NCBI GenBank assembly: GCA_965603825.1
Contig: CBFDEM010000011.1
Coordinates: forward strand, 248,001 to 312,000
DNA from: Blepharisma stoltei ATCC 30299
Taxonomy: Eukaryota > Protista > Ciliophora
Direction of reading: 5' to 3'
Length of the DNA stretch: 64,000 nucleotides
The notes below the pieces were generated by a model, which made no database searches, had not been told where the DNA came from, and saw nothing but the letters and a program-made list of their open reading frames with translations. The position numbers were made by a program, and so were the translations under genes. Positions 3,069 through 63,882 of this stretch are shown piece after piece (position 1 is the stretch's first letter; every line of letters starts with the position of its first letter).

Positions 3069-3642
3069 TTAGATTATTAATGTAATTTGAAGTTCTACTT
3101 GGAAAATTAAATAAACGTAAGAATTATATAATTTTATTTACATAATGGCATATATTAAATTACATGATTTTTTTAAATCTATATCTCAACTTTTTCATAT
3201 TAAGGATTCCTCATATTAAATTTAGCTGGCAATGCCACATAAGTTCAGCAATAATTTAGAGTGGAGTATTATCTTACACAATTATGTAAAAAAGAACCCA
3301 TATAATAAAATTGTAATATGGGATGGTTTAAGGACCAATATAATCGCCAAAAAAAACATTTATTATCATGATGTTTTAAAATCAAAAGGACATTACCATT
3401 ATTCCTTTACTCATATTTCTGAATAATTTCTATTTATTATGAAAGCGAAAAAGACTTAATTTTATTGTGAAATTTATAAATTTTAATTTTAAAACAATTA
3501 CTAGTCTACTGTGTGTAGGAGCCATTTTAACTTAGTTATTGCAAATATTTTGCTTAAATAAAAAAAAATTCTAATTTAATTAAATATGTTACGTCAGCAT
3601 CAATTTCACTTTGGTGTTGACATTAATTATAAAAAACTTATA

Positions 3643-4800
3643 ATGAATAAAATCATAGCCATTGCAGCGCCTCTCATTTTGTCAGTTCTTCTTCACATAT
3701 ACATTTTAAACCAAGAATTAATTCCAGAAGCCTATTATAACATTGAAGATTTGATAACATCTAAGGGCTATAATTTCACATATCACTATGTAATTACTGA
3801 TGATGGGTATATACTAAAAGCATTTCGTATATTTAAAAGCTCTCCAAACGGAAAACCAATTCTTTTCATGCATGGATTAGCTGGTAATGCTGATTGCTTT
3901 TTAATAAATATCAACTCAAAAGCGCCTGCGTTTCGACTGGTAGATGAAGGTTTTGATGTTTGGGTACTTAATAGTAGAGGAAATAATTATAGTAGAAATC
4001 ATACAATTTATGATGTCGAATCAAAGGAATTTTGGGCATATACAGCTTCTGATATCACATTTTATGACATTCCAACTTATATAAAATATATCAAAGGTAT
4101 AACTGGATATGATAAGCTTTCTTATATAGGCCATTCGCATGGAGCATCCCTTATGATTGCTTATCTTGCTCTGAATTCCGATTTTTCAGAGGATATATCT
4201 GTGGTCATATCAATAGCTGGAAATGGTCCTCAAGTTAATCTAAGGTCGTATATGGTTAAACTAGCTTTATCTAATTTTTTTTTGGACTTTGCAGATTGAA
4301 TTGGAATTAAAGTGGTTATGGATTCTCCGTCATATTGGGTTGCTAAGCTTATTCAAGTATTTCCTATGGGCGCTTATTATCTTAGTAGAGATATTTATGA
4401 TTACACAATTCATAAAGACAAGCCTGAAGGAATAGCTTATTATGCCTTAAAATTTCAAGGTGGGGTGGGCATAAATTCTCTAAGATATTGCAAATCGCTT
4501 ATAGAGAGCCATGGGTTGATCCAGCTATACGATCATGGGCCAATTAAGAATATGGAATTATATGGAAGTATTGAGCCTCCTATAGCAGATTACTCTAAAG
4601 TCAAAAGTAAAATTGCAATTATTGGAGGAAAGTATGACAAGTTAATACATCCTGATGATACTTTTTCTCTATATAAATCTTTGCCCAAAGAAATTGTTAT
4701 TCACTATAAAATTTATGAGCATGACCATGGAACTTTTTTGTTATCCAAAAATATGGACTATCTAGAAGATGTTATTAGGATTCTTAACTCAAATAAATAA
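3643..4800 (+). CDS. Acid/lysosomal lipase-like alpha/beta hydrolase, copy 1
   Basis: N-terminal hydrophobic segment, TDDGYIL, HGL, GFDVW..NSRGN.YSR.H, GHSHG nucleophile elbow. One in-frame TGA at 4297 joins the two track ORFs. Confidence 0.9.
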
Positions 4801-4903
4801 ATATTATTACAAAATTTAATTAAATATACTAATTTAGTTTATGAAATTTGTTAAATTAGCTAAATTTCGCATTGCTGTGGACATTAATTATAAGAAGATT
4901 AAG

Positions 4904-6061
4904 ATGAATTTAATCATAATTATTGGAGTTCCTGTGATTTTATCTCTTCTCCTTCATATCTATATATCAAGCCAAGAATTAATCCCAGAAGCCTATTATA
5001 CCATTGAAGAACTTATTAAATCTAAGGGCTACAATCGCACAGATCACTATGTAATTACGGAAGATGGATATATACTAAAAGCATTTCGTATATTCAAAAG
5101 CTCTCCAATTGGAGCACCAATCCTCCTTATGCATGGATTAGGTGGGAATTCTGATTGCTTTTTAATAAATATCAATGCAAAAGCACCTGCATTTCGACTT
5201 GTGGATGAAGGCTTTGATGTCTGGGTTCTTAATAGCAGAGGAAATACTTATAGTAGAAATCATACGAGCCTTGAAATTGATTCAAAGGAATTCTGAGCAT
5301 GAACTGCTTCTGATATTGCAACTTATGATATTCCAACCTATATAAAATATATCAAAGGCATAACCGGATATAATAAACTGGCTTATTTAGGTCACTCTCA
5401 GGGAGCAGCACTTATGATTGCATATCTTGCTTTGAATTCTGATTTTTCGAAGGATATATCTGTAGTTATATCTATTGCTGGGAATGGTCCTAAAGTTACT
5501 CCAAGATCGTATATGATTAAGCTCCTTTTATCTGATTGTTTTTTAAATTTTGCAGATTGAATTGAAATGAAAGTAATAATGGATACTCCATCATATTGAT
5601 TTGCTAAGCTTATTCAGGCTTTTCCTTTGGGTGCATATTATCTTAGCCGTGACAGATATGATTACACAATTCATAACGATAAGCCTGAAGGCATGGTTTA
5701 TTATGCCTTGAAATTTCCTGGTGGAGTGAGTATAAACTCTCTGAGATATTGCAAAGCAACCCTGGAGAAAAATAGCTTTATCCAGCTATATGATCATGGA
5801 CCTATTAAAAATATGAAATTATATGGAAATGCTATTCCCCCAATAGCAGATTACTCTAAAGTCAAAAGTAAAATTGCAATTATTGGAGGAAAGCATGATC
5901 AGGTTATACATCCTGATGATACATTTTCTCTTTATAAATCTTTGCCTAAAGAAATCGTTATTCACTATAAAATTTATGAGCATGACCATGGAACATTTTT
6001 GTTATCCAAAAATATGGACTATCTAGAAGACACTATTAAAGTTCTAAGTAATTACTTATAA
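4904..6061 (+). CDS. Acid/lysosomal lipase-like alpha/beta hydrolase, copy 2 (tandem paralog)
   Basis: Colinear with copy 1 at an offset of 1261 nt; GHSQG motif. Four in-frame TGA (5294, 5300, 5558, 5597), two of which align with TGG in copy 1. Confidence 0.9.
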
Positions 6062-9116: not shown

Positions 9117-10283
9117 ATGGGATTATGCTTTCCTCGGTCTAAGGATGATAGAAGTCCAAGCACAAAAAGTCTCAACTCGCCTTCTATAGACGAATATTTG
9201 CCGCGTCGGCTTTCTGTTGTTCCAATTAATAATACACCAAGTGCAGAAGACCCGTTTTGCAACTCTCCGGGGCTTTCTCCACAAGATTTTAAGGATTTTA
9301 ATAATCGACGAAGCTATCCTTCGAGATCTGTATTAAAAATCGAAGGAAAAATGGGTTCACGGCACCAAAAGAGCTTTGAAGGGAAGAGGGTGAATATTAT
9401 AGGTGACTCTGGCCCTGAAATTATGCGAAAATTAGGAATTGCAGTAACTTGTAAAAAAGGCTTGAAACTGAATTTGCCGAACCAAGATGATTTTACAATA
9501 GTGATTGATGAGAATTGTTATTATTTTGGCGTGTTTGACGGACATGGAAATGACGGCCATGAAGTATCAAATTATGTTAGGCGTTATTTGCCTATGCAGA
9601 TTATGGCTCATGATTTATTTGAAATTGATATATTGAGAGCCTTTACTGATTGCTACTTGAAAATTAATCAAACTTTAGAAACCCTTGGGAGCGGCAAAGA
9701 TGCAGAATTTGATACTTTGTTGTCAGGGACAACTGCGACCAGTATAATTGTAAAAAATAATCATCTTTATATAGGCCATGTTGGTGATTCTCGCGCTATT
9801 TTAGGGTTGAAAAGAGAGGATGGTTATGAGGCATTTAGGGTAACAATTGATCATAAACCGATGCTTCCTGAGGAGAAAAAAAGAATTGAGTCGAAAAAAG
9901 GACAAGTAAAAAGATTGGACAATGATATTCCATACAGAATATTTGTCAAAGATCAAAATTATCCAGGGTTGTCTACGTCTAGGGCCCTTGGAGATTTATT
10001 GGCTCAAAAGGTTGGAGTTATACCTGATCCTCAGATATGTGAAATGGAAATCAGCATAAATACAGAATATTTAATTATATGCAGTGATGGGGTATGGGAG
10101 TTCATAAGTGACCAAGAAGCACTTGAGACAGTGGCTTCTTTTGGGAAAAATGTAGAGCTCGCAGTTGAAGCGTTAGCAACTCTTGCATATGAGAGGTGGA
10201 TTGAAAACGAAAAAGATATCTCGGATGATATCACTGTCATTATAGTGCTGATGCCATCTCTCTTAAATTTTGGGAACGTATAA
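9117..10283 (+). CDS. PP2C/PPM family protein phosphatase with predicted N-acylation (MGLC)
   Basis: NQD, FGVFDGHG, SGTTA, HVGDSR, DHKP...E..RI, SRALGD, ICSDGVWE, DDIT motifs. Confidence 0.95.
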   Translation: MGLCFPRSKDDRSPSTKSLNSPSIDEYLPRRLSVVPINNTPSAEDPFCNSPGLSPQDFKDFNNRRSYPSRSVLKIEGKMGSRHQKSFEGKRVNIIGDSGPEIMRKLGIAVTCKKGLKLNLPNQDDFTIVIDENCYYFGVFDGHGNDGHEVSNYVRRYLPMQIMAHDLFEIDILRAFTDCYLKINQTLETLGSGKDAEFDTLLSGTTATSIIVKNNHLYIGHVGDSRAILGLKREDGYEAFRVTIDHKPMLPEEKKRIESKKGQVKRLDNDIPYRIFVKDQNYPGLSTSRALGDLLAQKVGVIPDPQICEMEISINTEYLIICSDGVWEFISDQEALETVASFGKNVELAVEALATLAYERWIENEKDISDDITVIIVLMPSLLNFGNV

Positions 10284-25921: not shown

Positions 25922-26734
25922 ATGGGTACTTGCGTTTCTGCTAATTCAGCTAATAAAGTAGTCTCAATCAAAATAGATAACACCAATTCTAGAGAAACTG
26001 AGCACTCTCCTGCTGATAAACGGTACAGTAGTAACCCGAATAGAAAAATCCTTCTAGACTACTATGCAGCAGCCCGCAGCCAAATGCATAGAAAAATTAA
26101 ACAATTATTCGAAATCATTTTTTCAGGAGACCACTTAGACACCAAAGAAATTAATTTAAATTTCACAAAAATTGATGTAGTCAGCATTTATCATTTAAAA
26201 ACAGTTCTACAGTATTTTGAGAACTTAAAATCTCTTTGTCTGTGGAAAACTGGGATTGTATCAAGAGACTTAAAAAGACTCTCCAAATCGTTTGAGACGT
26301 TGACTAAGCTTGAAACTTTAAACATTCAAGGGAATAATATTGATACAGAAGGTGGAAAATATTTATCAGGGATTCTTCGCAAAACTAAGCAGCTTAAAGT
26401 GCTTTATTTGAGCGAAAACCAATTAGGCTATGAAGGGTGTATTAGTTTTGCACCATGCTTGAGGTCAATTTCAAATTTAGAGCAGCTAGCTTTGGATGAG
26501 AATAAAATCCAAGATGAAGGGCTAGCAGCACTTGTACCGAACTTGCTTGCTATGACGAACTTAAAATATTTGGGGTTAAGATATAATGACTTAACTGCAA
26601 ATTCTAAAAACAACTTAGAACTTTTGGTAACATCATTAGCAAACTTAAAAACTATTGGGCTGAGAGATAATGAAGTTCCTGATAGTGTGATACAGGTCAT
26701 TAAATTCCGTGCTCCAAAGATAGAGTTTCTTTAA
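25922..26734 (+). CDS. RNI-like leucine-rich-repeat protein with predicted N-acylation (MGTC)
   Basis: Repeated L..L.L..N.I...G...L units of about 28 aa. Confidence 0.88.
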   Translation: MGTCVSANSANKVVSIKIDNTNSRETEHSPADKRYSSNPNRKILLDYYAAARSQMHRKIKQLFEIIFSGDHLDTKEINLNFTKIDVVSIYHLKTVLQYFENLKSLCLWKTGIVSRDLKRLSKSFETLTKLETLNIQGNNIDTEGGKYLSGILRKTKQLKVLYLSENQLGYEGCISFAPCLRSISNLEQLALDENKIQDEGLAALVPNLLAMTNLKYLGLRYNDLTANSKNNLELLVTSLANLKTIGLRDNEVPDSVIQVIKFRAPKIEFL

Positions 26735-50297: not shown

Positions 50298-50660
50298 TTA
50301 TGAATCAGATATTCTCTTGCCTAAATTAACTGAATCCTTTTTTAAGACATGCAATAGGGTTTGAGAGCTTTCAAGAATTTTCATATAAGCTGCTTCAGTT
50401 TCTTGAATAGTTCTATCATATTCATTCCTTGTTTGATGTTTTTTATTCAAGCTTTCTACATATTTGCTACCATTAACTTTTCCTAGTTTTTCGCTAAGCC
50501 CGGCAAGTTGCAATTCAAGTGTGCTTTTTTCTTGCCTAATTTGTTCAATTTTCAGATCCAGTTCTGATTTTTGTTCTTTTAGCTCTTCCAAATACACTGC
50601 AAGCTGATTGTTGCAGCTTTGCAAAGACGCTCCCTAATTTATTTATACCTGAGAAGTCAT
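50298..50660 (-). CDS. SSNA1: SSNA1/NA14/DIP13 microtubule-associated coiled-coil protein
   Basis: MTSQ|[11 protein letters not shown]...[33 protein letters not shown]. Introns at 50634-50648 and 50456-50470. Confidence 0.93.
50456..50470 (-). other. 15-nt stop-free in-frame intron GTAGCAAATATGTAG
   Basis: GT-AG ends, A10. Removal gives KVNESL, matching the SSNA1 coiled coil; retention inserts GSKYV. Confidence 0.8.
50634..50648 (-). other. 15-nt intron GTATAAATAAATTAG
   Basis: GT-AG ends, A10. Removes in-frame stops and restores MTSQGASLQ. Confidence 0.92.
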
Positions 50661-50688
50661 TTAATTATAATCAAATTACTATAAAAAG

Positions 50689-51626
50689 TTATACCAAAAT
50701 TGCCTAAATATTTTTTTACTTCAAAAAGCGTTTGGTGAGACTTAAAAACCATGCCATTATAGATCTCGAAGTCTTCATTTAAATACAGTCACGTTCCATT
50801 TGTGCTAGATCTTTGAGTATCTATATCTCCGTCCCCCAGTGTTCACCCAGAAATTGGATTATAGTAAATTGTGCATTGAATTTTTGATAATAAAGGATCA
50901 TCAATTTTTAAATTGCAGCTCATATGTCGCCCAATCCTGATAATTGAATCAATTTCTCTATAACTTTTTATTTCTCCTGCTACGTTCCCACCATAAACTT
51001 TTAAAATTAATCTTACTGAATGCTCTGTGTTCTGCTTAAGTAAATTTATAACTATAAAACTTTCCCCAATGTTTATCAGCATGTTGTTTTTTAATATCTA
51101 TAATAAAGTTTACAAGTGCATAATCAAGCTTTACAAATACCCCAAATCCTTTTGCAAGATCTCGAATTCAGTAAGAATCTTTATCAATTTTATAAAAAAT
51201 CACAAAATTTCTACCTCTGTTATTGTCTTCCATTTCTCTGTCTTTTAAAGGAATCACAAAATCATTGACAATCTGAGATTTTAGCTTTTTTTTGCAGCCA
51301 AAAAATGTAAATCCATCATAAGCATTTCTAAGAGATCCAACCAATCCTGTAGGCTTAAAGGTCAAAATAGATCCTTTTGTAAGATTTTCAGAATTTAAAA
51401 CCTTTAGTTGTAAAGCTTTTCCATTAGTAAGTGCTTGCAATTGGGCTTTTTTAGCATCAATATTACTCATATCAATGTCAATATTTGAAATAATTGAGGA
51501 AAATAGATCAGAAGGTCTTTGAAATGAATTCCTTGAGTTAGTTTTGTTTTTTGCTGCATATAAAGAAATTTCGCTGTTCCTGTTTGTTGAATTTGCATCA
51601 CAGCAGCCGAAGACATTATTTCCCAT
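50689..51626 (-). CDS. Tandem FHA-domain protein with predicted N-acylation (MGNNVFGCC), 3 exons
   Basis: YWIRDL.KGFGVF, IRIGR...C...IDD.LLSKIQC.I.Y....W.L.DG.....STNGTW (both W are TGA). Two 16-nt introns. Confidence 0.85.
50704..50719 (-). other. 16-nt intron GTAAAAAAATATTTAG
   Basis: GT-AG ends, T10/A11 (A at -6), phase 0, yields ...LFE|AILV*. Confidence 0.7.
51098..51113 (-). other. 16-nt intron GTAAACTTTATTATAG
   Basis: GT-AG ends. Needed to join the 51168-51626 and 50843-51082 frames. Confidence 0.85.
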
Positions 51627-51654: not shown

Positions 51655-52149
51655 TTAAGGTAATATAAGGTAGGTTCGTAGCTGTTGCTCTCCTGTGTCT
51701 TTCAATTGTTTTCGGAAGCCAAAATTGGGGCTAACACAGCTTCTTTTTGAGGAAACTCTATCAAATGCTTGATAGAAATCTATTAAATGCTTCCCCATTA
51801 GATAGGCAATTACAATTGATGAGCTTCGGGATATCCCTGCTGCACAGTGAACAAGGACATTTTCGCCTGCTGATAAGTGCTGATGAATAAATTGGAGAGC
51901 TGATGGTAAATGTTTAGCTAAATCTTGGTAAGGATTATCCCAAATTTCAACGAAATGATAAGTTATTCAATCAAATCTTTCTGTGTATTGGCTTTCTAAG
52001 GCTTGGACTATATATTTGATATTGTGTGCCCTGAGCAGTTCCTCACACTCTGCAGCTCTCATACATCCAAGATACAAGCCTTGCTCAATTTCATGCATAG
52101 GCTCGTAATAAAACCCAAAATAGTTGTTTGCTTCATCAAGATCTACCAT
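51655..52149 (-). CDS. Atypical dual-specificity protein phosphatase
   Basis: Read through TGA 51967: GLYLG, WDNP, VLVHCAAGISRSSSIVIAYLM, R..V.PN.GF..QL. Confidence 0.93.
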
Positions 52150-52979: not shown

Positions 52980-53207
52980 TTAATTACTTGTGTTGGACCT
53001 ATCAGGAGTAGAAATGAAAGCCACTGTAATCCGATAGGTGCTACCCTTGATTTCAAAGTTGAAAGGAGGACCGTTTTCGTTTGAACTTAGCTTAAGCTCT
53101 TTGTTAATCAATGGTGAAGAAACAAAGTGCTCTTGGAGAGAGGTATCTCCTTCCTCTTCATGCATGGTTTTACTCTTGAACGTTTTGGATGGTAATCCGC
53201 AACCCAT
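52980..53207 (-). CDS. MGCG microprotein family, copy 1 (75 aa)
   Basis: MGCGLPSK...EEEGDTSL...FEIKGSTYRITV...STPDRS; paralogous to seven neighbours. Confidence 0.85.
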   Translation of the reverse strand: MGCGLPSKTFKSKTMHEEEGDTSLQEHFVSSPLINKELKLSSNENGPPFNFEIKGSTYRITVAFISTPDRSNTSN

Positions 53208-54126
53208 TATTATTGGTCAAATTATAAAATGTATGACCATTTTAATTTTCGAATATCATGTGAAAATAAATTTTCTTTTAGATAAGGCCTTATTACTAAT
53301 TTTTGCTAGTATGGAAATATTATCGTGTGAATTGAAATAATGAGAGCTTTAGGAAGGCAGTTTCAAAGTATTTTTATTACACAATTTAAATGTGATTCTT
53401 TAGGGTTCACTACCTTATACGGAATCACTGAAAGAGATTTATGAGGTTTTGACGATCGTAGAACAAAAGGAAACTATCCACTAGTTATTAGTGGTTCAAA
53501 TAGAACTCTGATTTTGACAGAAGGAAATTTAACTTCAAAAGGTCGTGAAATGAGACAATTTATTGTTGTTCAGAGCTGAGACTGCTTTAGTCTATGACAA
53601 AAATAAAACACGAAATTTAAAGTTTTAATAAGAAAAATCTAGGCTTTAACTTAAATTTTTGATATTTAATATTAGAAGAGGCTTTTATAATATTTTGCAT
53701 TTTTCACAGATAAATCAATAGAAAAAGTTGAAGCTCACTTATTTGAAATTTAACAGTTAATGTTTGAATACCTAAATCAATATTCTTAAAGAATTAATTT
53801 TCACTTAGTAAATACTTTTTAATAGCTTAATTATTTATACCCTGAATAGAGAAAGAAACAGCTAATAATACTCAAATATCTTCAAATTAACTTATAGATT
53901 ATAAATTCTCTTGCAAATTGCAAAAAATGTCTAATAATAACTAAAATAGAATTCAAATATTTTATAATTATAATTTTGAGAATTGAAACAGAATTCTCAT
54001 AAACAATAGAAATAAAAATTTCAAATTTTTTTATCTAAGTTTAAAAATCAAATTTTTATTATAATTCAGTTAATATATTAATTATAAACATACTGAATTG
54101 TTTGTGTGTAAATAATATACATCATT

Positions 54127-54351
54127 TTAGTGAAATACTTGAGATCGATCAGGTGTTTTAACCATTGCAACAACTATCCTATAAGGTGTTCCATGTATTT
54201 TGTACGTTAGGTCTGATTGTGTAAAATCTGTTATCATTTTCTTCTTATATTGATTTAAATTGATGTTTGAATAGTGAAGAAGAGACGTGTCTCCTTCCTC
54301 TTCGAGGCTTTTATTAATTCTGAACGCTTTTTGTGGAGCTCCACAACCCAT
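54127..54351 (-). CDS. MGCG microprotein family, copy 2 (74 aa)
   Basis: MGCGAPQK...EEEGDTSL...YKIHGTPYRIVV...KTPDRS. Confidence 0.85.
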   Translation of the reverse strand: MGCGAPQKAFRINKSLEEEGDTSLLHYSNINLNQYKKKMITDFTQSDLTYKIHGTPYRIVVAMVKTPDRSQVFH

Positions 54352-55664
54352 TTACGCTTTTAATAATTATAAAGTTAATATAAATCTGGCCAGATTATAC
54401 GCTGTGATTTCAAAGCCATTTTCTGGAATTCTCTTAAATTTCAAAACGTCCACCATAATCAGTAAAAAAGAAATTTTATTTTTTATATTTCTCATATATG
54501 TAACATATATATGCAATAGCTATTTAGCAAGTAAAAATCGTGTGGATCATTTTATGACATATTGGGCTGACCAAAATAATTATTATTGGAAAAATTAACT
54601 AAGACAGAACTAGCCGGGCACAAGAAGAATAATATTTATAAAGCATTAGGCGAAGTAGACTTATGCTTTTTAAATATAAATTATCATCAGGAAAATTAAG
54701 AAAACTTTTTTTATGAGCTCAATTTAATAATTAAGAATGAAAAAATTAAAATTCAAAAAAATATAGCAGCTAAATTCAGTAATATTACATAACTTACTTA
54801 ATTTGTTGATAATTCAAAATAAGCCTTACGGCTTACTCATTTAAGACATCTAACTCTAAAAGCTTTTTATTATGAAGACACTATTATTGAATTTTAATTA
54901 TTTTAACTTTATTTATTGTATTGGAAAAATAAATGGATTCATAAACTAGCCATATTTTTTGATTCTTTTATATTTAATAGCTTATGATTTATAGCTTAAA
55001 GAAAAATAAGCACTTTTTACATCTCTTTCAAAATAAATAATTAAAAAGTTCAACGGACTGTGTATAAGTTTTATTCAAGTAATTAAATTTTAAGTAAGAC
55101 TAAGATATTTCTTCTTTAAGTTTAATTTGCTCGTGATAAATCAGGCAATAAATTTAATTTCTTTTATATATAGAAAAAAATCTAATTGAAATAAATATAA
55201 ATAAGAGCACTTGGATCATTAAGCCTCTAAATTCTTAAAAAGCGCATAAGAAAGATAAAAATAAATTTTAGTATTTTTTTGACTGACATTTTTATACGAT
55301 CAATCACTTAAATTTTGATTTGGTATTCCACCATACTCACCAATTTTTATTGCAAAGCCAATTCTTCTTTCATTAAGAGAGAGGTTCCCAATAGAATAAA
55401 TCTGTGAAATTGGAGCTATATAGATTTTTAAATGAATTACCATGGTAAGGAATTTTTATTTTAAAATTCAAAGTATCTAAAATATAAATTTTTTGCCTCT
55501 GAGTAAAGAATTTTTAAAAATTAATTCAAGCTGATAGTAAAATTTTATGTTTTTTGGCAAAATTTCTCAAAAATACCTTTTTTTTATTGATGCTAACTAA
55601 TTTACATCAAAAAATTAGATTAATTGAAGTTTTGTCTAATTGACTTATATAGTGTATCACATCC

Positions 55665-55889
55665 CTAAGACATCACTAAAGATTTTTCAGGGGTGGAAAT
55701 AAGTTCCACAGTAATTCTATACTTCGCTCCGTGAACTGTATAGTTAAAAGAGCTTTCAGCGGGATGGAAAAATTTATGTTGTGTGTAAAATGATGATGAA
55801 TTGTCGGGGTGGTCTCTAAGAGATGTGTCTTCATCTTCCTCTTGCTCTTTCTTGCTATTGACTCTTTTTGATGGTAATCCGCAGCCCAT
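55665..55889 (-). CDS. MGCG microprotein family, copy 3 (74 aa)
   Basis: MGCGLPSK...EEDEDTSL...YTVHGAKYRITV...STPEKS. Confidence 0.85.
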   Translation of the reverse strand: MGCGLPSKRVNSKKEQEEDEDTSLRDHPDNSSSFYTQHKFFHPAESSFNYTVHGAKYRITVELISTPEKSLVMS

Positions 55890-56967
55890 TGTTTAATTAA
55901 TTATTGTATAAATTATTGCCATTTATTAATCGACACATTTCTGAGTTATTTTTATCCTTATCGTTGACGAAATTATAATTATTTTGCCTATTTATTATGG
56001 AATATTTTCCCTTTTATTTTATATTTATGTGATTAGCATTTTTAAACTTTTCATTAATTAGTAAAAATTAAAATAGTAAAGCTAAATTCATTCGCATATG
56101 ACTAGATAAATTAGTTTTTAAATTAATTAGGGGAAATTTTAGGCTAAAATGGATTAAAGTAATTCTTAAAATAATAGAAATATTTACTCAGACCGTTAAA
56201 TTGGGACCAAAATTCTGTTCAAATTTAAAGGGTTATCTTTTTTAAACAAATAGATTTTTTGCCTGATTTTAAATTATTATTAGTCTCTTGTAATCTATTT
56301 CATCTTTTTTCATAGGTAAATATTTTTATTGAAGTAACGCTTTAGCTTCCAGCAGGTAAAAAGTTCAAATATTTTTTTCTATTCGTATCTGGGCTTAAGG
56401 ATTATTATCATTCAATGTACATTCGTAAAGAGTTTTAACTCTTTTGGATAAATCACTATTTACTTTATTTTCTTACTTCTTCAAAGTAACTCTCAAATAA
56501 CTTTTTGCCCAAGCACAAAAATAAGCAATCTAACTATCAAGAAAATTTTGGATATTTATACTTAAACACTCAATTAAACTTCTAATTTTTTCTATTGCAA
56601 TCAATTGAAGATGGGAAATGTAACTGCTTTTTACTTTTGAATGAAAACAATTTTATAGATCCTAATAAAGTAGGTATCTAATAGAGATAGCAAAAGATAA
56701 AAAATTACAATTATGGCATTTCAAATCTTCTTGAAAATAAAATTTTTATCTAGATAAAAGCTTATCCACACATAGGAATTTGAATGAAAATGTAAGAAGA
56801 AATAAAAAATTGTACAATTTTCAATAAATATCAATAAAAATTAGCCTATTCTTGTACGTCATAAAACTAAGTATACTGAGAATGCTTTCATTTATATATA
56901 CGCCAATAATGATGTTTAGAAAAAGCTTTATAGAATATCTTAGTCAATTTATCAAAAGTTTAATTTA

Positions 56968-57216
56968 TTAGTCAAACTGTGAAGAGCAGTCATTGTACTT
57001 TACTCTGCTAATAATAATTGTGTAAGATGTCCCTTTTATATTGTATTCAAAATGGTTATCTCAGCAAGAAAACCCTGATTTTTGGTCTGCCATTGGAGAT
57101 TTTATATATATGCTAGGTATTCGAGGATTGGAATTGAAGTATTGGAGAGAAGTATCAAGTTCATCTGCTTTGTTGAGCTTTGAGGTAGCCTTTCTTTTAG
57201 GAACTCCACATCCCAT
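56968..57216 (-). CDS. MGCG microprotein family, copy 4 (82 aa; missing from ORF track because of an internal TGA)
   Basis: MGCGVPKRKATSKLNKADELDTSLQYFNSNPRIPSIYIKSPMADQKSGFSCW(TGA)DNHFEYNIKGTSYTIIISRVKYNDCSSQFD*. Confidence 0.82.
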
Positions 57217-57234
57217 TGTAATTTTTTATTAATT

Positions 57235-57340
57235 TAATTCCATAAATTTTGAATAAATGCAAAATATTTATTAAAAAAAACTAGCCATTTATCAGAGTCA
57301 AATGTAAATTAAAATTTGAAAAATATGTGCTAATCAAAAT
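57235..57340 (-). promoter_or_regulatory. Upstream block of array copy 4, repeated at about 58865-58912 and 59103-59190
   Basis: Shared + strand CCATTTAT...AATTAAAATTTGAAAA...AATCAAAA blocks. Confidence 0.45.
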
Positions 57341-58559
57341 ATTTTAATTAAAATTCCCATAATTGATATTTCAATTAATAAATTTGTTGCATATTCATTG
57401 GGATTTTTCAATTTGCTTCTTTTTTCTATTTACATGATACACCTTTTAGTCAAATCCTAAAAATTTTTAATGCTTCAAAAATTCTTAAACTGTAGCTAAA
57501 TTTATATATATTTTCTTTTTTTCAGCATTGCCTTTATTGCTTAAATATTAATAAAAATGAGCTTATTTGAGACACTGACCATAGTTCTTAGCAAATTATC
57601 TTCTTACAACTTAAATATTGCTTTTAAGATCTTGCATTTATCTATATTAGCTATTTTCAGATTATTCTCAAGAAAACTATAGAGCACTTATTAAGCTTTT
57701 TTAAGAATGCATATATTTAATGATAATAGAGAAATTTACTTAATGGCTTAAGATATTTATTGACTAAATTAATTTCGAAAAAATTTTACTTTCTTCAAAT
57801 CCTATTTAGATATATTTTATTAACATGCGAGCAATCTGAGTTACGTGCAAAGCTGAGAAAAAAGTTGTTTAAAGAGCTAAGTCGCTAGAGGATCGACTAA
57901 AATGAGTTAAATTAAGTAATTATATATGCAATTCAAATTCTTGTTTTCACCAGCCTGCGTTATTATTCTCATTAAAGAGCATTTAAATTTTAGCTCAAAG
58001 CTTATTTTATTGACAACTGGAAGTTCTTTTATATAATTACAATCTATATACTAATAGAACATTTTCTTTAATTGGCATTTTAAAAGGCAAAAGCAGAATT
58101 GATATCCATAGCAACTCAGATGTAGAATCTTGATCTTAAAGAATTTTTTTAGATAACTGCTTAAACACCCAGATTAGGTTCCTCATCCTTTTTAATTTAT
58201 CTCTGGCACACAATTTTAATGCATCAATATTTTAAGACTATTTATGCACTCAAACTTCAGCTGGGAAATAAATTTTAATAGTTAGTCTCTTAAAGATCGG
58301 AATGTTTCACAAATTTTCCCATCTCAAATTTAAAATTAAATGCACCTTATCCACACATTGGAGTTTGAATTAAAATGGAGATTGATTTAGAGATTAAATA
58401 ATTTTAGATAAGCATTATAATAATTAAGCTATCATTGCTCAAAAAGCCTTTATATATATCAATCGTGAAAAATTTACTTTTTTAAAATTTAATTTATCAG
58501 AATATTTGCTAAATAATTCTAAAAATTAAATTTTAGTGATGGCACTAAGAGAAGTTGCT

Positions 58560-58781
58560 TTAATTCATGCAGCTAATTATTATTTGATAATTAGTCCCTT
58601 TTATGTTGTACTCATAATGGTTGTTTAAGCCAAAAAACTCTAAATTTTGATCTGAAATTGGAGGTTTTATATTGATGCTCGGCATTCGTGTATTGAAATT
58701 TATACTCCGTAGAGAAGTCTCACTTTCATCACCTTTATTAAACTTTGCAGGACACTTTTCTCTAGAAATTCCACATCCCAT
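58560..58781 (-). CDS. MGCG microprotein family, copy 5 (73 aa, C-terminally short)
   Basis: MGCGISRE...DESETSL...YEYNIKGTNYQIII; closest to copy 4. Confidence 0.8.
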   Translation of the reverse strand: MGCGISREKCPAKFNKGDESETSLRSINFNTRMPSINIKPPISDQNLEFFGLNNHYEYNIKGTNYQIIISCMN

Positions 58782-60111
58782 GGTTATTAAATGTTGTATA
58801 GATTATGACATTAAAATTTAATTTCAGAATTTTTGCACATCACAAAATATAAAAAATTAAATTATCCATTTATTTGAGAATTAAAATTTGAAAATTAAGT
58901 GAAAATCAAAATAATTCCTAATTAAAGCATCTTAAGGAACAATCCATTTCCAGAAATTTTTAATGTTTCATGCTATAGAAGCTTTGTAGCAGATTAATTA
59001 AAGAGCGAGCACTCCTTTGTGTGCCTACCCACTATAAGAAAACTGTTGGAAAAAATAATATGCAAGCAATCTTTACTAGTTTATAATTTAAGAACAATAG
59101 CAAATTCCATAAATTTTTTAATCAAAACAATAAAAAATCACCATTTATCTGATTAAATTAAAATTTGAAAATTAACAGTTAATCAAAAATTTCTTAGTCT
59201 AATTTTATGTTGGCAAAAGTTAATAAGTACGGACTGATATGAAATGCTAAAATATGACTTTCAAGAAATCAGTCAAAAACTTCGCTAAGCATGTTGAGTG
59301 CAAGAACAACAGACTATTAAAAAAGATAATTATTTTAATAACTTAAAACTAAAAATAAAGGGCTTTTAATATCTTTTTTATACAGAAATTCAAATATTAT
59401 AGGATTTTGTGCTAAAAATAAATAGCAAAGTTTACCATTTATTAGAAAAATTAAAAGTTAAACTATTTGATGTATAATTTACTGATACACCAATTAAAAT
59501 AATGAAGATAACTAAATAAGTGAGGATTTATAATGATATGAAAGTGTTATATTTTAAAGTTTTATTCAATTAAATTAATAACGGCACAAAAGTATGATAG
59601 TAAGGCAATTGATTAATGACTAAAAATAATTGAGCTATTAAGGACCTTGGATTATGAATTCAGGATCTGGACAATTTATTCGCCTATTTATTGGAATAGG
59701 ATTAAAATATAAAAATTAATCTCTCATTGCTGCTTAAGTTATATTTTTTAATTAATTGTTTACTAATTTTGTGAAGAAATAAAATCTACTCTCTAATTTG
59801 CTTTAATATTCCTTCAATTAAATAGGTTTTAATTTCTGTTGAATCAATTCAGCATATCACGATAATTTATTACTTAGTTAGAAACATGGTGAAAATTCAA
59901 AAAATTGAGTTAAATTCTCATTATAACCGAATTGAAGCCCAATCTTCTCTCATAATTTTAGAAACTGTTGGTTCTACTCAATTTCAAACAAAGACCCTCA
60001 AAGAGAAAAATCATGATAAAGTCTCGTAATTTTATCTTCACTATCAAATTTATTTGTTTTGTGTTAATTGCATTATCTAATATTTTAACTTTGGAATTAC
60101 ACTTGTCCAAT

Positions 60112-60336
60112 TTAGGAAAGCACTTGGGATAATTCTGGGCTCTTTATACAGCTAATAATTATTTTATAAGCCATACCATTTACGTTATATAAGAATTGTC
60201 CGTTCTCTTGTCGCTTGACTTTCTGCTCTGTGATTGAGGAATTATGATGAATATTAATATCTTGGAGAGAGGTATCTCCTTCCTCTATTTCATTTCGCTT
60301 CACTTTAAACATCTTTTGAGTAGCTCCACATCCCAT
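60112..60336 (-). CDS. MGCG microprotein family, copy 6 (74 aa)
   Basis: MGCGATQK...EEGDTSL...YNVNGMAYKIII...KSPELS. Confidence 0.85.
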   Translation of the reverse strand: MGCGATQKMFKVKRNEIEEGDTSLQDINIHHNSSITEQKVKRQENGQFLYNVNGMAYKIIISCIKSPELSQVLS

Positions 60337-61577
60337 GATTATTTATTTTATTATCTTAAAATATTCCATGCAAGATTTGGACTTATTATAATTACTGAAC
60401 CAGTAATATCTAATCATAATCAAAAGTTTATTGTCAATCAGTAAATACAGCCATTTTTTAAAAGGACAGGAAATCCATTTTGCCAAGAGCTTGAGTTTTT
60501 TAAATTATTTTTTAGATCATATCAACTGAAAAGAATTAAAAATTTTTAGTCAACAAAACTTTGATAATTGAAAATTAACAAAATTCTAGATTATTAAGAA
60601 TAATAGTACCTAAATAACGCACTTTATATCGATTTTAATGATGTGGTATATTTATTTAGCTGAGTACAGTGCTTGCAGTTTTATAATACATTGATCTGTT
60701 CTTTTTAAAGATGAAAATTAAAAGTAAAATTCACCTTTATGAGTAAAATATTATGTGATAATAGGTTTTAATTTTATATTTTATGCTGATTTTCTAATAA
60801 TTTTCTAAATTAATTTTATTATGTTTTTAATCTCCTTCTTTCAGATTTTTAAATAATTGGAAAATGAATTATAAGCTATATGGAGTTATAATATTATTGT
60901 TTAAAATTTAAACTTTAATTATTCGAATATTTTTTTAAGAATTTATTATTGTAAAAAAGCTAATAAATAGGTAAGATTTAAACGAACTTTATTATTAGAT
61001 TAAGTTCCATTAATTTTAAATAAATGACACATTTTCCATAATGCTTAAGTTAAATAGTCTCTACTATTAGGTAATCATCATTGATGATATGCATGTATTA
61101 GGCTCTATAATCATGATATAATTTAAATAATTTGGCTTAACTGGTTTCCTCAATTTTGGATATTCTCTTGAGAAAATATTATGCATGAGAATGCTTTTAA
61201 ATTTTAATGGCTTAATAACTAAAAATTATCAAATGGAATGCATATACAATTTTAGATGTTTACACCAATTCCCATCTTAAGCATTATTAGCTTCGAAATC
61301 AGCCATTTAATAGTAATTTTTACTCTAGTTAAGTAATTAAAAAAAGCAATTATCTAAGGTTTAAGTTTATATTTATCTAAATAGAAAATGATAGCTGCAG
61401 ATAAAAATTACGTTTTTGATGATCAGCTGCTGTTCCAAAAAAATCATTTTGAGTTTCTAATTTTGTTAAGCTAATTTAGATTGTAAATTATTTAAACAAG
61501 ACACAAGAATTAAACTTTTTTAAAATAGTTTAAATATAAATAAGGCTATTTACTATGCATATGCACATATATACATT

Positions 61578-61820
61578 TTAAGCAAATACCTGTGATGCAT
61601 CTGGTGTTCTCATATTGCTGACAATTATCTGATAAGTTGCCCCTTTTACTTTATATTCAAAGCTGCCTCGAGTTTCAGGTAGCTTTGTTTTGTAGTTAGC
61701 ATTTGGAGAATTGGCTTTGGTTTTTGGTGTGTAGCAGGTGAGGTCCTGCTGAAAGGCTTCGCTATTGTCTTCAAGGATAAGTTTTGGTTTGCAAATATTT
61801 TGAGAAATTCCACAACCCAT
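61578..61820 (-). CDS. MGCG microprotein family, copy 7 (80 aa)
   Basis: True start is MGCGISQN at 61820; YKVKGATYQIIV...RTPDAS; DTSL degenerate (EAFQ). Confidence 0.82.
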   Translation of the reverse strand: MGCGISQNICKPKLILEDNSEAFQQDLTCYTPKTKANSPNANYKTKLPETRGSFEYKVKGATYQIIVSNMRTPDASQVFA

Positions 61821-63657
61821 AGTTTTTATTATATAATTATAAAGTAAATAATAATAACCCAACAGATTTTAAGAATTTTACCATAAATATTATAAACTAA
61901 GTTCAAACACCAGCTGCTTGAAATACAGGAAAAAGCCATTTATATAATAAAGTTGAGAAAAAAACTCGATATTGAAACTAAATTTTTGAAGAATTAATCT
62001 ATTTGAAATATCCTAAATATTTTTGCAGCCAAATTACAGAAAATAGATTTTAAATTGTTTTTATAATTATTTCATTTACTTTTATATACATTATAATGGC
62101 AAAGACAATATCAAAACCTCTAGGCACAAAGAATTTGCATAAAATTTATTTTCACTAATTTTCCATTGAAAAATTTCTAATCAAGGGAGGAAACATTTTT
62201 TGGATTGCTAATAATAACAATCAATTTTATGATCAATCTATAATTACCTCATACATTTTTTAGCTTATTTTATTCGCCTTTTTTAATATACATTTGCATC
62301 GCGTCTGCAAAAAAAGCAAAAGTGCAAAATAAAGCAATTTGACATTTCTGAATTTTATTTAATTTTTTTTATATGCTATAGCAACTAGATTAATGATAAA
62401 GCTTAAAGAAGAGGAATAATAAAATAATAATTTTCCTTATCTTAGCACATATCCTTCTCAACACCCTAAATCCATTTTAAAAAAATGTACTTCTTTAATC
62501 TCAAATTATTTTTATTAGAGATTTTATAGAGAATTATACTTCAATCGCTCTCCATTTTACAGATTCTTTATTTAGCTTTATATTACAGTTATTTTAAATT
62601 CAAGGTCTTAGGTGGACTCAAAATAAATAGAATCATTAGTTTTAGCAAGATACATAATAAGCAGGTTTAAAGCATATAATAGAGCAGATCAATGAGTAGA
62701 ACTAACTAGCTGGCTCCCCTAAGTGTTTTAATAAAATTTAAGAAATGAAATAACTGATAAAACAAGATGACGTAAAAAGGTAACAACTCTTTAATCATAG
62801 CATCTTTAAGATTCAAAAATTCATTTGGATATTCTTGCTTGATAAATTTGCAGACGGACATCGCTCATAAGATTTTAGGCATTATCGGAAGGTTTTTCAA
62901 GAAACTTACACAGAATGCACCTTATTTAGTGGCCACTTTAATATGAATTAAGTAAAAAGGAAGCCAGATTAACCTTCAAGAAAGCCAAGAAAATTATGCT
63001 TGCACTTGAAAATAATCAAGAAAAGTTAATCCTTACTTAAAAACACTTAAAATTTAGATGAGCAAATAAAGAACTGAAATTAAATAAAATCACAGCAAAA
63101 ATAACAAATTTCTATAAATGCTGAGCAAGTTAGGACAATATTATCCAGTATATTTCAAGAAAAGGCTTATAGATAGCTGAGTTGTCCCATTTATAAAATT
63201 GATTTGAAGGAAAGAATCCCGAAGCAATGAGTCTAAAATAGGAGGATTTATTTACGTTTTATTACTTTTCATAAGCCAAATAAAGCTTGCTTTGTGAGAT
63301 TTAAAGGCAATTATTAATTTTGACATCATTTCCTTGTATTGAAAATCCACAATTTTTATGCTTTTTAACCCTTTTTACCAAAAATTTTTGATTTCTTAAT
63401 TTGAGTTTTTAGTATTAAAGCCATGGATATTGCATATTTGATAAGAAAATGGCAAATTCTCAAAATGCTTGATAATTAAGAAGCAATAAAAATCGAACTT
63501 CCATTTTTGAGCTGTTTCTCATTGTCAATATACAAAAGTTCTGAGTTATTTGCAAAATCTCCAAATTCCTCTTAAACTTATCTAAAAGCGTTTCCATTTA
63601 AAATCTGTAACTTATAATTAAACATTTTAAGAATTAGATTATCGTGCAGCTTATAAT

Positions 63658-63882
63658 TTATTTAAATACAAGTGACTGATCTGGACTTATCACATCTTTT
63701 ACAACGATTTTATATGCCGTTCCTTTTACATCATAAGAAAACTTGCCACTTTCTTGCTGGTTTATAATGAACTTTACAGTAGAGGTAATGATAGTGTTTA
63801 CATAAATTCCATGAAAAGAAGTATCAACTTCTTCTGGACTTCGCTTTCCTTTTGAAAGTTTTTGGGAAATGTTGCAACCCAT
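63658..63882 (-). CDS. MGCG microprotein family, copy 8 (74 aa)
   Basis: MGCNISQK...EEVDTSF...YDVKGTAYKIVV...ISPDQS. Confidence 0.83.
   Translation of the reverse strand: MGCNISQKLSKGKRSPEEVDTSFHGIYVNTIITSTVKFIINQQESGKFSYDVKGTAYKIVVKDVISPDQSLVFK

Follow-up and report, generated by a model that had tools for sequence, protein, structure and literature searches.

The 64,000-nucleotide (nt) stretch analysed here, which we call the window, is macronuclear DNA from contig CBFDEM010000011.1 of the ciliate Blepharisma stoltei ATCC 30299 (assembly GCA_965603825.1, positions 248,001 to 312,000), and it carries towards its right end a tandem array of very small genes whose predicted products begin with Met-Gly-Cys. 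We read the window with UGA as Trp and with UAA and UAG as stops; this is the published B. stoltei code (PMC9942806), and it keeps long frames open in the other genes of the window. An initial annotation made from the sequence had described eight co-oriented MGC open reading frames (ORFs) of 73–82 amino acids (aa), and all eight are confirmed, within 52980–63882 of the minus strand, each ending in TAA or TAG:

52980..53207, minus strand: copy 1 (W1), 75 aa, MGCG start
54127..54351, minus strand: copy 2 (W2), 74 aa
55665..55889, minus strand: copy 3 (W3), 74 aa
56968..57216, minus strand: copy 4 (W4), 82 aa, one in-frame TGA, long linker, tail T-P lost
58560..58781, minus strand: copy 5 (W5), 73 aa, no tail
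60112..60336, minus strand: copy 6 (W6), 74 aa, strand 2 reads Y-K-I-I-I-S
61578..61820, minus strand: copy 7 (W7), 80 aa, acidic block degenerate
63658..63882, minus strand: copy 8 (W8), 74 aa, MGCN start

The M-G-C starts thus lie at 53207, 54351, 55889, 57216, 58781, 60336, 61820 and 63882. In 500 dinucleotide-resampled sequences the mean number of MGC-type ORFs was 0.002 and the maximum 1, against the eight observed. The copy said to be hidden by a TGA-Trp codon is copy 4, and the public annotation also translates its single in-frame TGA as W (P0020). Copy 5 stops at a TAA right behind the hairpin described below, and the frame downstream of it is closed again. Hidden introns of 15–16 nt were considered and set aside (there are a few GT-AG candidates, but none is required, and the aligned frames are continuous). 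The array is sparse; over the first 52 kb of the window about 79% of the sequence is coding, against 17% in the array, whose spacers of 919–1837 nt compare with a median gap of 228 nt elsewhere in the window, and no other convincing gene was found in these spacers. The four sequence blocks said to be shared by the copies can all be recognised, with the acidic second block weak in copy 7; an acidic residue stands at position 21 in copies 1–6 and as D20 in copy 8, and six of the eight copies have [ST]-P-[DE]-x-S, all as originally described. The array also continues past the window end, as had been suspected, with two further genes (copies 9 and 10) on the same contig (C11). Seven window copies are exact NCBI/UniRef records, all of them unnamed predictions; copy 6 did not surface among such records, although no direct look-up was made for it. 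The phrase "unrecognised family" is therefore apt for the family and its function, but not for the individual genes.

Family members and selection

Profile searches of the 41.46-Mb, 64-contig B. stoltei assembly, proposed with the initial annotation and run here to convergence, recovered 25 members at 8 loci. These are the ten genes of the C11 array (the last two beyond the window), a sister array of seven genes on the duplicated contig C32, and eight dispersed members in six places (a second site on C32, C44, C62, C33, two on C57 and two on C36). With two proteins from a second ciliate (sequencing run SRR24908292, discussed below) they make up the set of 27 sequences to which the counts below refer. 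As a domain within larger proteins of the genome the conserved module was not found, save for one doubtful case (E=0.16). No known domain had been recognised in the products, and indeed nothing significant was returned by Pfam, NCBIfam, the PDB (by sequence or by fold) or the ESM Atlas; the best Pfam, NCBIfam and PDB sequence E-values were 0.03–0.06, for single members only, and ESM Atlas scores were all below 0.9. The PDB sequence matches were to designed proteins with ideal hairpins and were not significant.

Ratios of nonsynonymous to synonymous divergence (dN/dS) were calculated by the Nei-Gojobori method with a UGA=Trp table for eleven close pairs (790 codon pairs); dS is near saturation, so the values are rough. 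The pooled estimates are dN 0.35, dS 1.11 and dN/dS 0.31 (bootstrap confidence interval 0.24–0.39), well under 1, so that the purifying selection expected of these copies is borne out by the test that had been suggested for it. Selection is uneven along the chain, with dN/dS 0.30 in residues 1–10, 0.18 in the acidic residues 11–24, 0.52 in the linker and 0.21 in the C-terminal part. Three window genes compared with their C32 counterparts give 0.22 (W1, 58% identity), 0.31 (W3, 57%) and 0.26 (W6, 59%). On this sequence evidence the eight ORFs are genuine protein-coding genes maintained by selection. If they were instead decaying or neutral duplicates lacking current function, the early end of copy 5 would be accounted for, as would a dN/dS higher than that of the flanking conserved genes (0.05–0.18). 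However, the open frame, M-G-C and the hairpin persist in 25 of 25 copies in spite of dS values above 1, the upper bound on dN/dS is 0.39, and orthologues exist in a second species; these comparisons have already largely refuted neutral decay, which we regard as extremely improbable.

Protein anatomy and a possible membrane-docking role

The initial Met, Gly and Cys, the turn Gly and a strand-2 Ile are invariant in all 27 members; the strand-2 Tyr is found in 26 (Phe in the other) and [ST]-P-x-x-S in 23. AlphaFold2 (AF2) predicts the full chain to be disordered (mean predicted local distance difference test score, pLDDT, 61) with residues 51–70 alone at 76–84, and the C-terminal part, when predicted by itself, forms strands at 10–15 and 18–23 joined by a two-residue turn (pLDDT 83–89) and followed by a coil tail. 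The small β-hairpin claimed from the sequence thus reappears in the structure prediction that had been proposed as a check. It is 15 residues long and is separated from the N-terminal anchor by a tether of 39–59 residues, made up of the acidic E-E-x-D-T-S block and the fast-evolving linker. Its hydrophobic residues are F/L, Y/F and V/I on strand 1 and Y, I and V/I on strand 2 (consensus Y-[KR]-I-x-[VI]-[ST]), and hydrophobicity alternates such that all conserved non-polar residues fall on one face, with K, R, N, E and T on the opposite one. The spacing from hairpin to C-terminus is fixed at 13 residues in most members. Two larger folds were considered and rejected: a third strand after T-P-D, where AF2 gives coil instead, and a ubiquitin/ferredoxin-type β1-β2 unit, which is at odds with the Gly-to-Pro spacing of 13 and the end of the chain at that point. 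The tail was lost in one clade (copies 4 and 5 and their C32 relative), on both duplicated contigs, and this clade retained its anchor and hairpin, which fits the tail being an accessory site. Near the N-terminus, 17 of the 27 have Ser or Thr at residue 6 or 7, and residues 5–16 carry a net charge between +2 and +5 in each of the 17 array copies, whereas four dispersed members have a charge of 0 or below there; several dispersed members show a weak basic patch or none.

An M-G-C start with basic residues nearby specifies myristoylation, S-acylation and a position on the cytosolic side of a membrane. Myristoylation, palmitoylation and a membrane or ciliary location are accordingly plausible for these proteins, and they are probably lineage-restricted, membrane-tethered docking or adaptor microproteins, as far as sequence and modelling can indicate; of the interpretation first offered, the coding genes under purifying selection, their tandem expansion and the hairpin are supported, and the membrane-tethered adaptor or inhibitor role is a proposal. 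After removal of Met, Gly2 would be myristoylated and Cys3 S-acylated, and the acyl groups together with the nearby Lys and Arg residues would keep the protein at the cytosolic side of the plasma, ciliary or cortical membrane. The disordered tether would then present the hairpin, which would most likely add onto the edge strand of a β-sheet in a partner protein. Because an amphipathic hairpin of 15 residues is too small to fold alone, it should need a surface to pack on, and the microproteins should not themselves be enzymes. Docking might recruit a soluble signalling enzyme to the membrane or inhibit it there competitively, and the [ST]-P-x-x-S tail would most likely be a proline-directed phosphosite of the GSK3-primed type that tunes binding. 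The copies probably differ in timing of expression and in affinity; the difference in timing is suggested by spacers of 0.9–1.8 kb where the median gap is 228 nt.

Small dual-acylated proteins are familiar in other protists. In the kinetoplastid SMP-1/HASP proteins and the apicomplexan ISP, ARO and GAP45 proteins, a similar anchor (M-G-x(0-4)-C) sends small proteins to the plasma, flagellar or cortical membrane, and these too include tandem families; they have, however, calpain-like, PH or armadillo folds or repeats and no sequence match with the microproteins. RCAN (calcipressin), a small phosphatase regulator, resembles them in that hydrophobic residues precede an [ST]-P-x-x-S, the primed pair of GSK3 type (S-P-P-x-S-P-P in RCAN), but it has an RRM domain and no acylation, and the microproteins had no Pfam match. 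Disordered microproteins with a lipid anchor and a single docking element are a known kind of protein; what is undescribed, within the reach of our searches, is this family with its hairpin module and its expansion. The recruitment of phosphatases by lipid-anchored microproteins was discovered only recently, in mammals, and we know of nothing comparable in heterotrich ciliates. The 27 natural variants of a single 30-residue module, with paired genome-duplication copies and one clade lacking the phosphosite, make the partner testable with short peptides.

Neighbouring genes, duplication history and range

Three neighbouring genes bear on the history of the array:

50639..51626, minus strand: FHA-domain gene, M-G-N-N-V-F-G-C-C start, tiny intron
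51655..52149, minus strand: dual-specificity phosphatase (DSP) gene flanking the array, intact HCxxGxxR
L001:3635-4126, minus strand: further DSP gene, separating copy 9 from copy 10, intact HCxxGxxR

The two DSP genes (57% identical to each other, dN/dS 0.12) enclose nine of the ten array genes. The FHA gene anchors the synteny with C32 and with the second ciliate, and its own product is likely to be dual-acylated, to judge from its N-terminus. We considered the microproteins as ligands of this FHA protein and rejected the idea; FHA sites have D, I or L at T+3, and that residue is variable in the microproteins.

The member loci are paired through paralogous neighbours, the FHA and FYVE genes on C11 and C32 and a ubiquitin protease on C62 and C33. 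Judged by these neighbours, the paired loci match the recent Blepharisma whole-genome duplication (WGD-β) described in PMC13685798. Copies 1, 2, 3 and 10 cluster with C32 genes in the same gene order (copy 1 being the positional partner of the first C32-array gene), so most of the array is older than the genome duplication. In the family tree, many of whose inner branches are weak, copies 4 and 5 group with 98% bootstrap support, as do copies 8 and 9, and the DNA of copies 4 and 5 is 69% identical over 369 nt; by these measures the two pairs are recent duplicates, younger than the rest of the array. The C11 and C32 arrays, the tree and the DNA identity of neighbours together bear out the tandem expansion proposed for the family. 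No DSP was found at the matching positions of the seven-gene C32 array or at the six dispersed loci. The DSP gene, which does not belong to the microprotein family, would nevertheless have been part of an ancestral microprotein-DSP unit; we infer that this unit was doubled, that the microprotein gene then multiplied in tandem, that the genome doubled, and that DSP was afterwards lost on C32. The paired paralogous neighbourhoods show dS of about 0.9–1.8, which we take as the footprint of WGD-β.

The Blepharisma-specific families and tandem duplicates treated in PMC13685798 resemble the microprotein genes in being short and genus-restricted, under weaker purifying selection and retained after WGD-β; they differ in that 94% of such families are single-copy, where this one has 25 copies, and the passages on them do not describe it.

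The hits of a HMMER search of 1.84 billion representative proteins were confined to B. stoltei members, two proteins of one other sample, and repeats of generic hairpins; the long bacterial and archaeal matches were of this last kind, in unrelated large proteins, and were discarded. The two proteins (P0021 and P0025) are encoded on contigs of run SRR24908292, from a UGA=Trp ciliate whose neighbouring conserved proteins are 58–77% identical to those of B. stoltei, with long conserved microsynteny. There the gene order FYVE, SLX9, microprotein, DSP, FHA repeats the frame of the C11 array around a single microprotein gene, and a second paralogue lies near PTEN, as in the C62/C33 pair. This ciliate is about equally distant from both B. 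stoltei duplicates, at a distance similar to that between the duplicates themselves. Its lineage seems to have split off around the time of the genome duplication or earlier, and it is a useful outgroup. Profile searches yielded no member from Stentor or from further ciliates; they were at their sensitivity limit (the most distant true member scored E=5e-4), and a search with the neighbouring SLX9 protein as a synteny route into Stentor returned the query alone. The family has so far been found only in B. stoltei and this one related ciliate.

Starts of the M-G-x-C or M-G-C-G type are also frequent among other, larger proteins of the genome (for example at 9117-10283 and 25922-26734 of the window and at L012:4824-7019, all on the plus strand), so the anchor alone fails to define the family. 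Two tandem genes of about 405 aa with similar starts, putatively lipase-like, lie at 3586-4800 and 4841-6061 (plus strand) in the window.

Candidate partners and alternative roles

By analogy, the best single candidate for the docking partner is calcineurin A, through its PxIxIT-binding groove, although we put this forward as a possibility and not as the expected outcome. The closest working analogue would be human calcimembrin (C16orf74/MICT1), a disordered microprotein that is myristoylated and S-acylated and carries a PxIxIT strand, and in which a phospho-Thr at +3 from PxIxIT raises affinity about 20-fold (PMC12612047). The microproteins share with it disorder, a myristoylatable Gly2, an N-terminal Cys for S-acylation, and a β-strand motif with Ile at 3, Ile/Val at 5 and Thr-Pro a few residues on. 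They differ in having Tyr for Pro1, no LxVP, and an additional conserved strand and Gly turn (the hairpin), in the Ser at T+4, and in forming a 25-gene family; profile searches detected no homology between the two. Known PxIxIT partners (PVIVIT, PKIIIT of A238L and IAIIIT of AKAP79; PMC6728138, bioRxiv 10.1101/632547) share the core x-[KR]-I-x-[VI]-[ST] with the microproteins (Y-K-I-I-I-S in copy 6 beside P-K-I-I-I-T), but in these the motif is a free linear segment and not part of a predicted hairpin. In PxIxIT motifs K or R at position 2 raises affinity, and AKAP79 places Ile in the Pro pocket (PMC6728138). Among the 27 members, 17 have K or R at position 2, position 3 is always Ile and position 5 always Val or Ile, and positions 2, 4 and 6 are never Pro or Gly. 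B. stoltei has at least 14 calcineurin-A-like genes (on C1, C4 (two), C5, C10, C27, C28, C33, C35, C40, C47, C48, C54 and C58), identified by a Pfam match and an adjacent pattern only; the docking strand reads N-I-Q-Q-F/Y in the ten shown, with N-I-Q where the human protein has N-I-R.

A good deal weighs against calcineurin. Position 1 of the strand-2 motif is Tyr in 26 members, Phe in one and Pro in none, and the published pattern P[^PG][FILV][^PG][FILV][^PG] is matched in register by 0 of 27 (five match elsewhere in the chain). When Tyr is placed at position 1, the values predicted by Rosetta have opposite signs, +3.1 on PVIVIT and -1.0 on IAIIIT. The composite LxVPxIxITxx(p)T motif is absent, an LxVP pattern occurring in 1 of 27 and elsewhere in the chain, and the tail T-P sits at +4, not at +3 as in calcimembrin. 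The fold search of the PDB gave no VIA-align match with Z≥2 and no Foldseek match with E≤0.001. Strand 1 and the invariant Gly are unnecessary for PxIxIT binding, and Y-K-I-x-V-S is equally what any amphipathic strand would resemble. Because of the Tyr at position 1, the Pro-demanding pattern, the conflicting models and the unexplained strand 1, we do not file the microproteins as PxIxIT proteins. The full proposal, that a Tyr-anchored calcineurin-docking hairpin (Y-K-I-x-V-S with a phospho-switch at +4) has been multiplied into 25 paralogues, as a toolkit convergent with calcimembrin that directs the roughly 14 calcineurin paralogues to specific membranes at specific times, is in our judgement unlikely. 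If true, it would require the definition of PxIxIT to be widened; if the partner is not calcineurin, the family remains an orphan, confined to one lineage of ciliates, whose main interest is as an example of small-gene expansion.

The same hairpin can be read in other ways. Several copies may join their hairpins in a sheet or small barrel, as homo- or hetero-oligomers, with the paralogues as subunits of a self-assembling membrane coat or scaffold. Biotin-carrier subunits offer a precedent of a sort, in that their N-terminal Y-x-V-x-V-N-G-x-x-Y hairpins pack around a partner helix. The strongly hydrophobic face, which must be buried, the invariant turn Gly, the fixed 13-residue spacing to the C-terminus in most members and the concentration of monomers that membrane tethering would bring all suit such a coat, but the second species has just one gene at the syntenic locus, and no sequence or fold match to proteins of this type was found; we consider a coat rather unlikely. 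The T-P tail and the DSP neighbours raise a different idea, a MAPK/CDK-phosphatase circuit in which the microproteins are tethered substrates or decoys whose T-P is phosphorylated by a proline-directed kinase and dephosphorylated by the neighbouring DSP. The microprotein-DSP order is ancestral (retained in the second species and present twice on C11), the catalytic motifs of both DSPs are intact, and a 120-aa protein encoded on C24 combines the hairpin and S-P-x-x-S in exact register with an RSK/MK2-like tail. On the other hand, no neighbouring DSP was found at the C32 array or the six dispersed loci, a MAPK D-motif pattern occurs in only 2 of 27 members, the match of the 120-aa protein is at E=0.16 and the pattern is missing from that protein's paralogues, and adjacency of genes in a ciliate implies no common function, all of which makes the circuit improbable. 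Finally, the end of strand 2 might be an RVxF site, making the microproteins PP1-targeting subunits; the C62/C33 pair reads K-V-S-F, and V-x-F occurs in seven basal-branching members, both second-species ones included. The RVxF pattern [KR]-x(0,1)-[VI]-x-[FW] is present in only 3 of 27, however, once out of register, and most array copies have D, Q, H, C or N in place of the Phe, so that PP1 targeting appears very improbable.

The 120-aa protein (C24:201517-201879, plus strand) belongs to a separate family of at least 10 proteins of 120–170 aa, whose C-terminal sequence D-D-C-S-x-x-P-x-x-I-x-L-x-x-P-x-x-S-x-L-x-R-R-R we take to resemble MAPK docking sites of the RSK/MK2 type.

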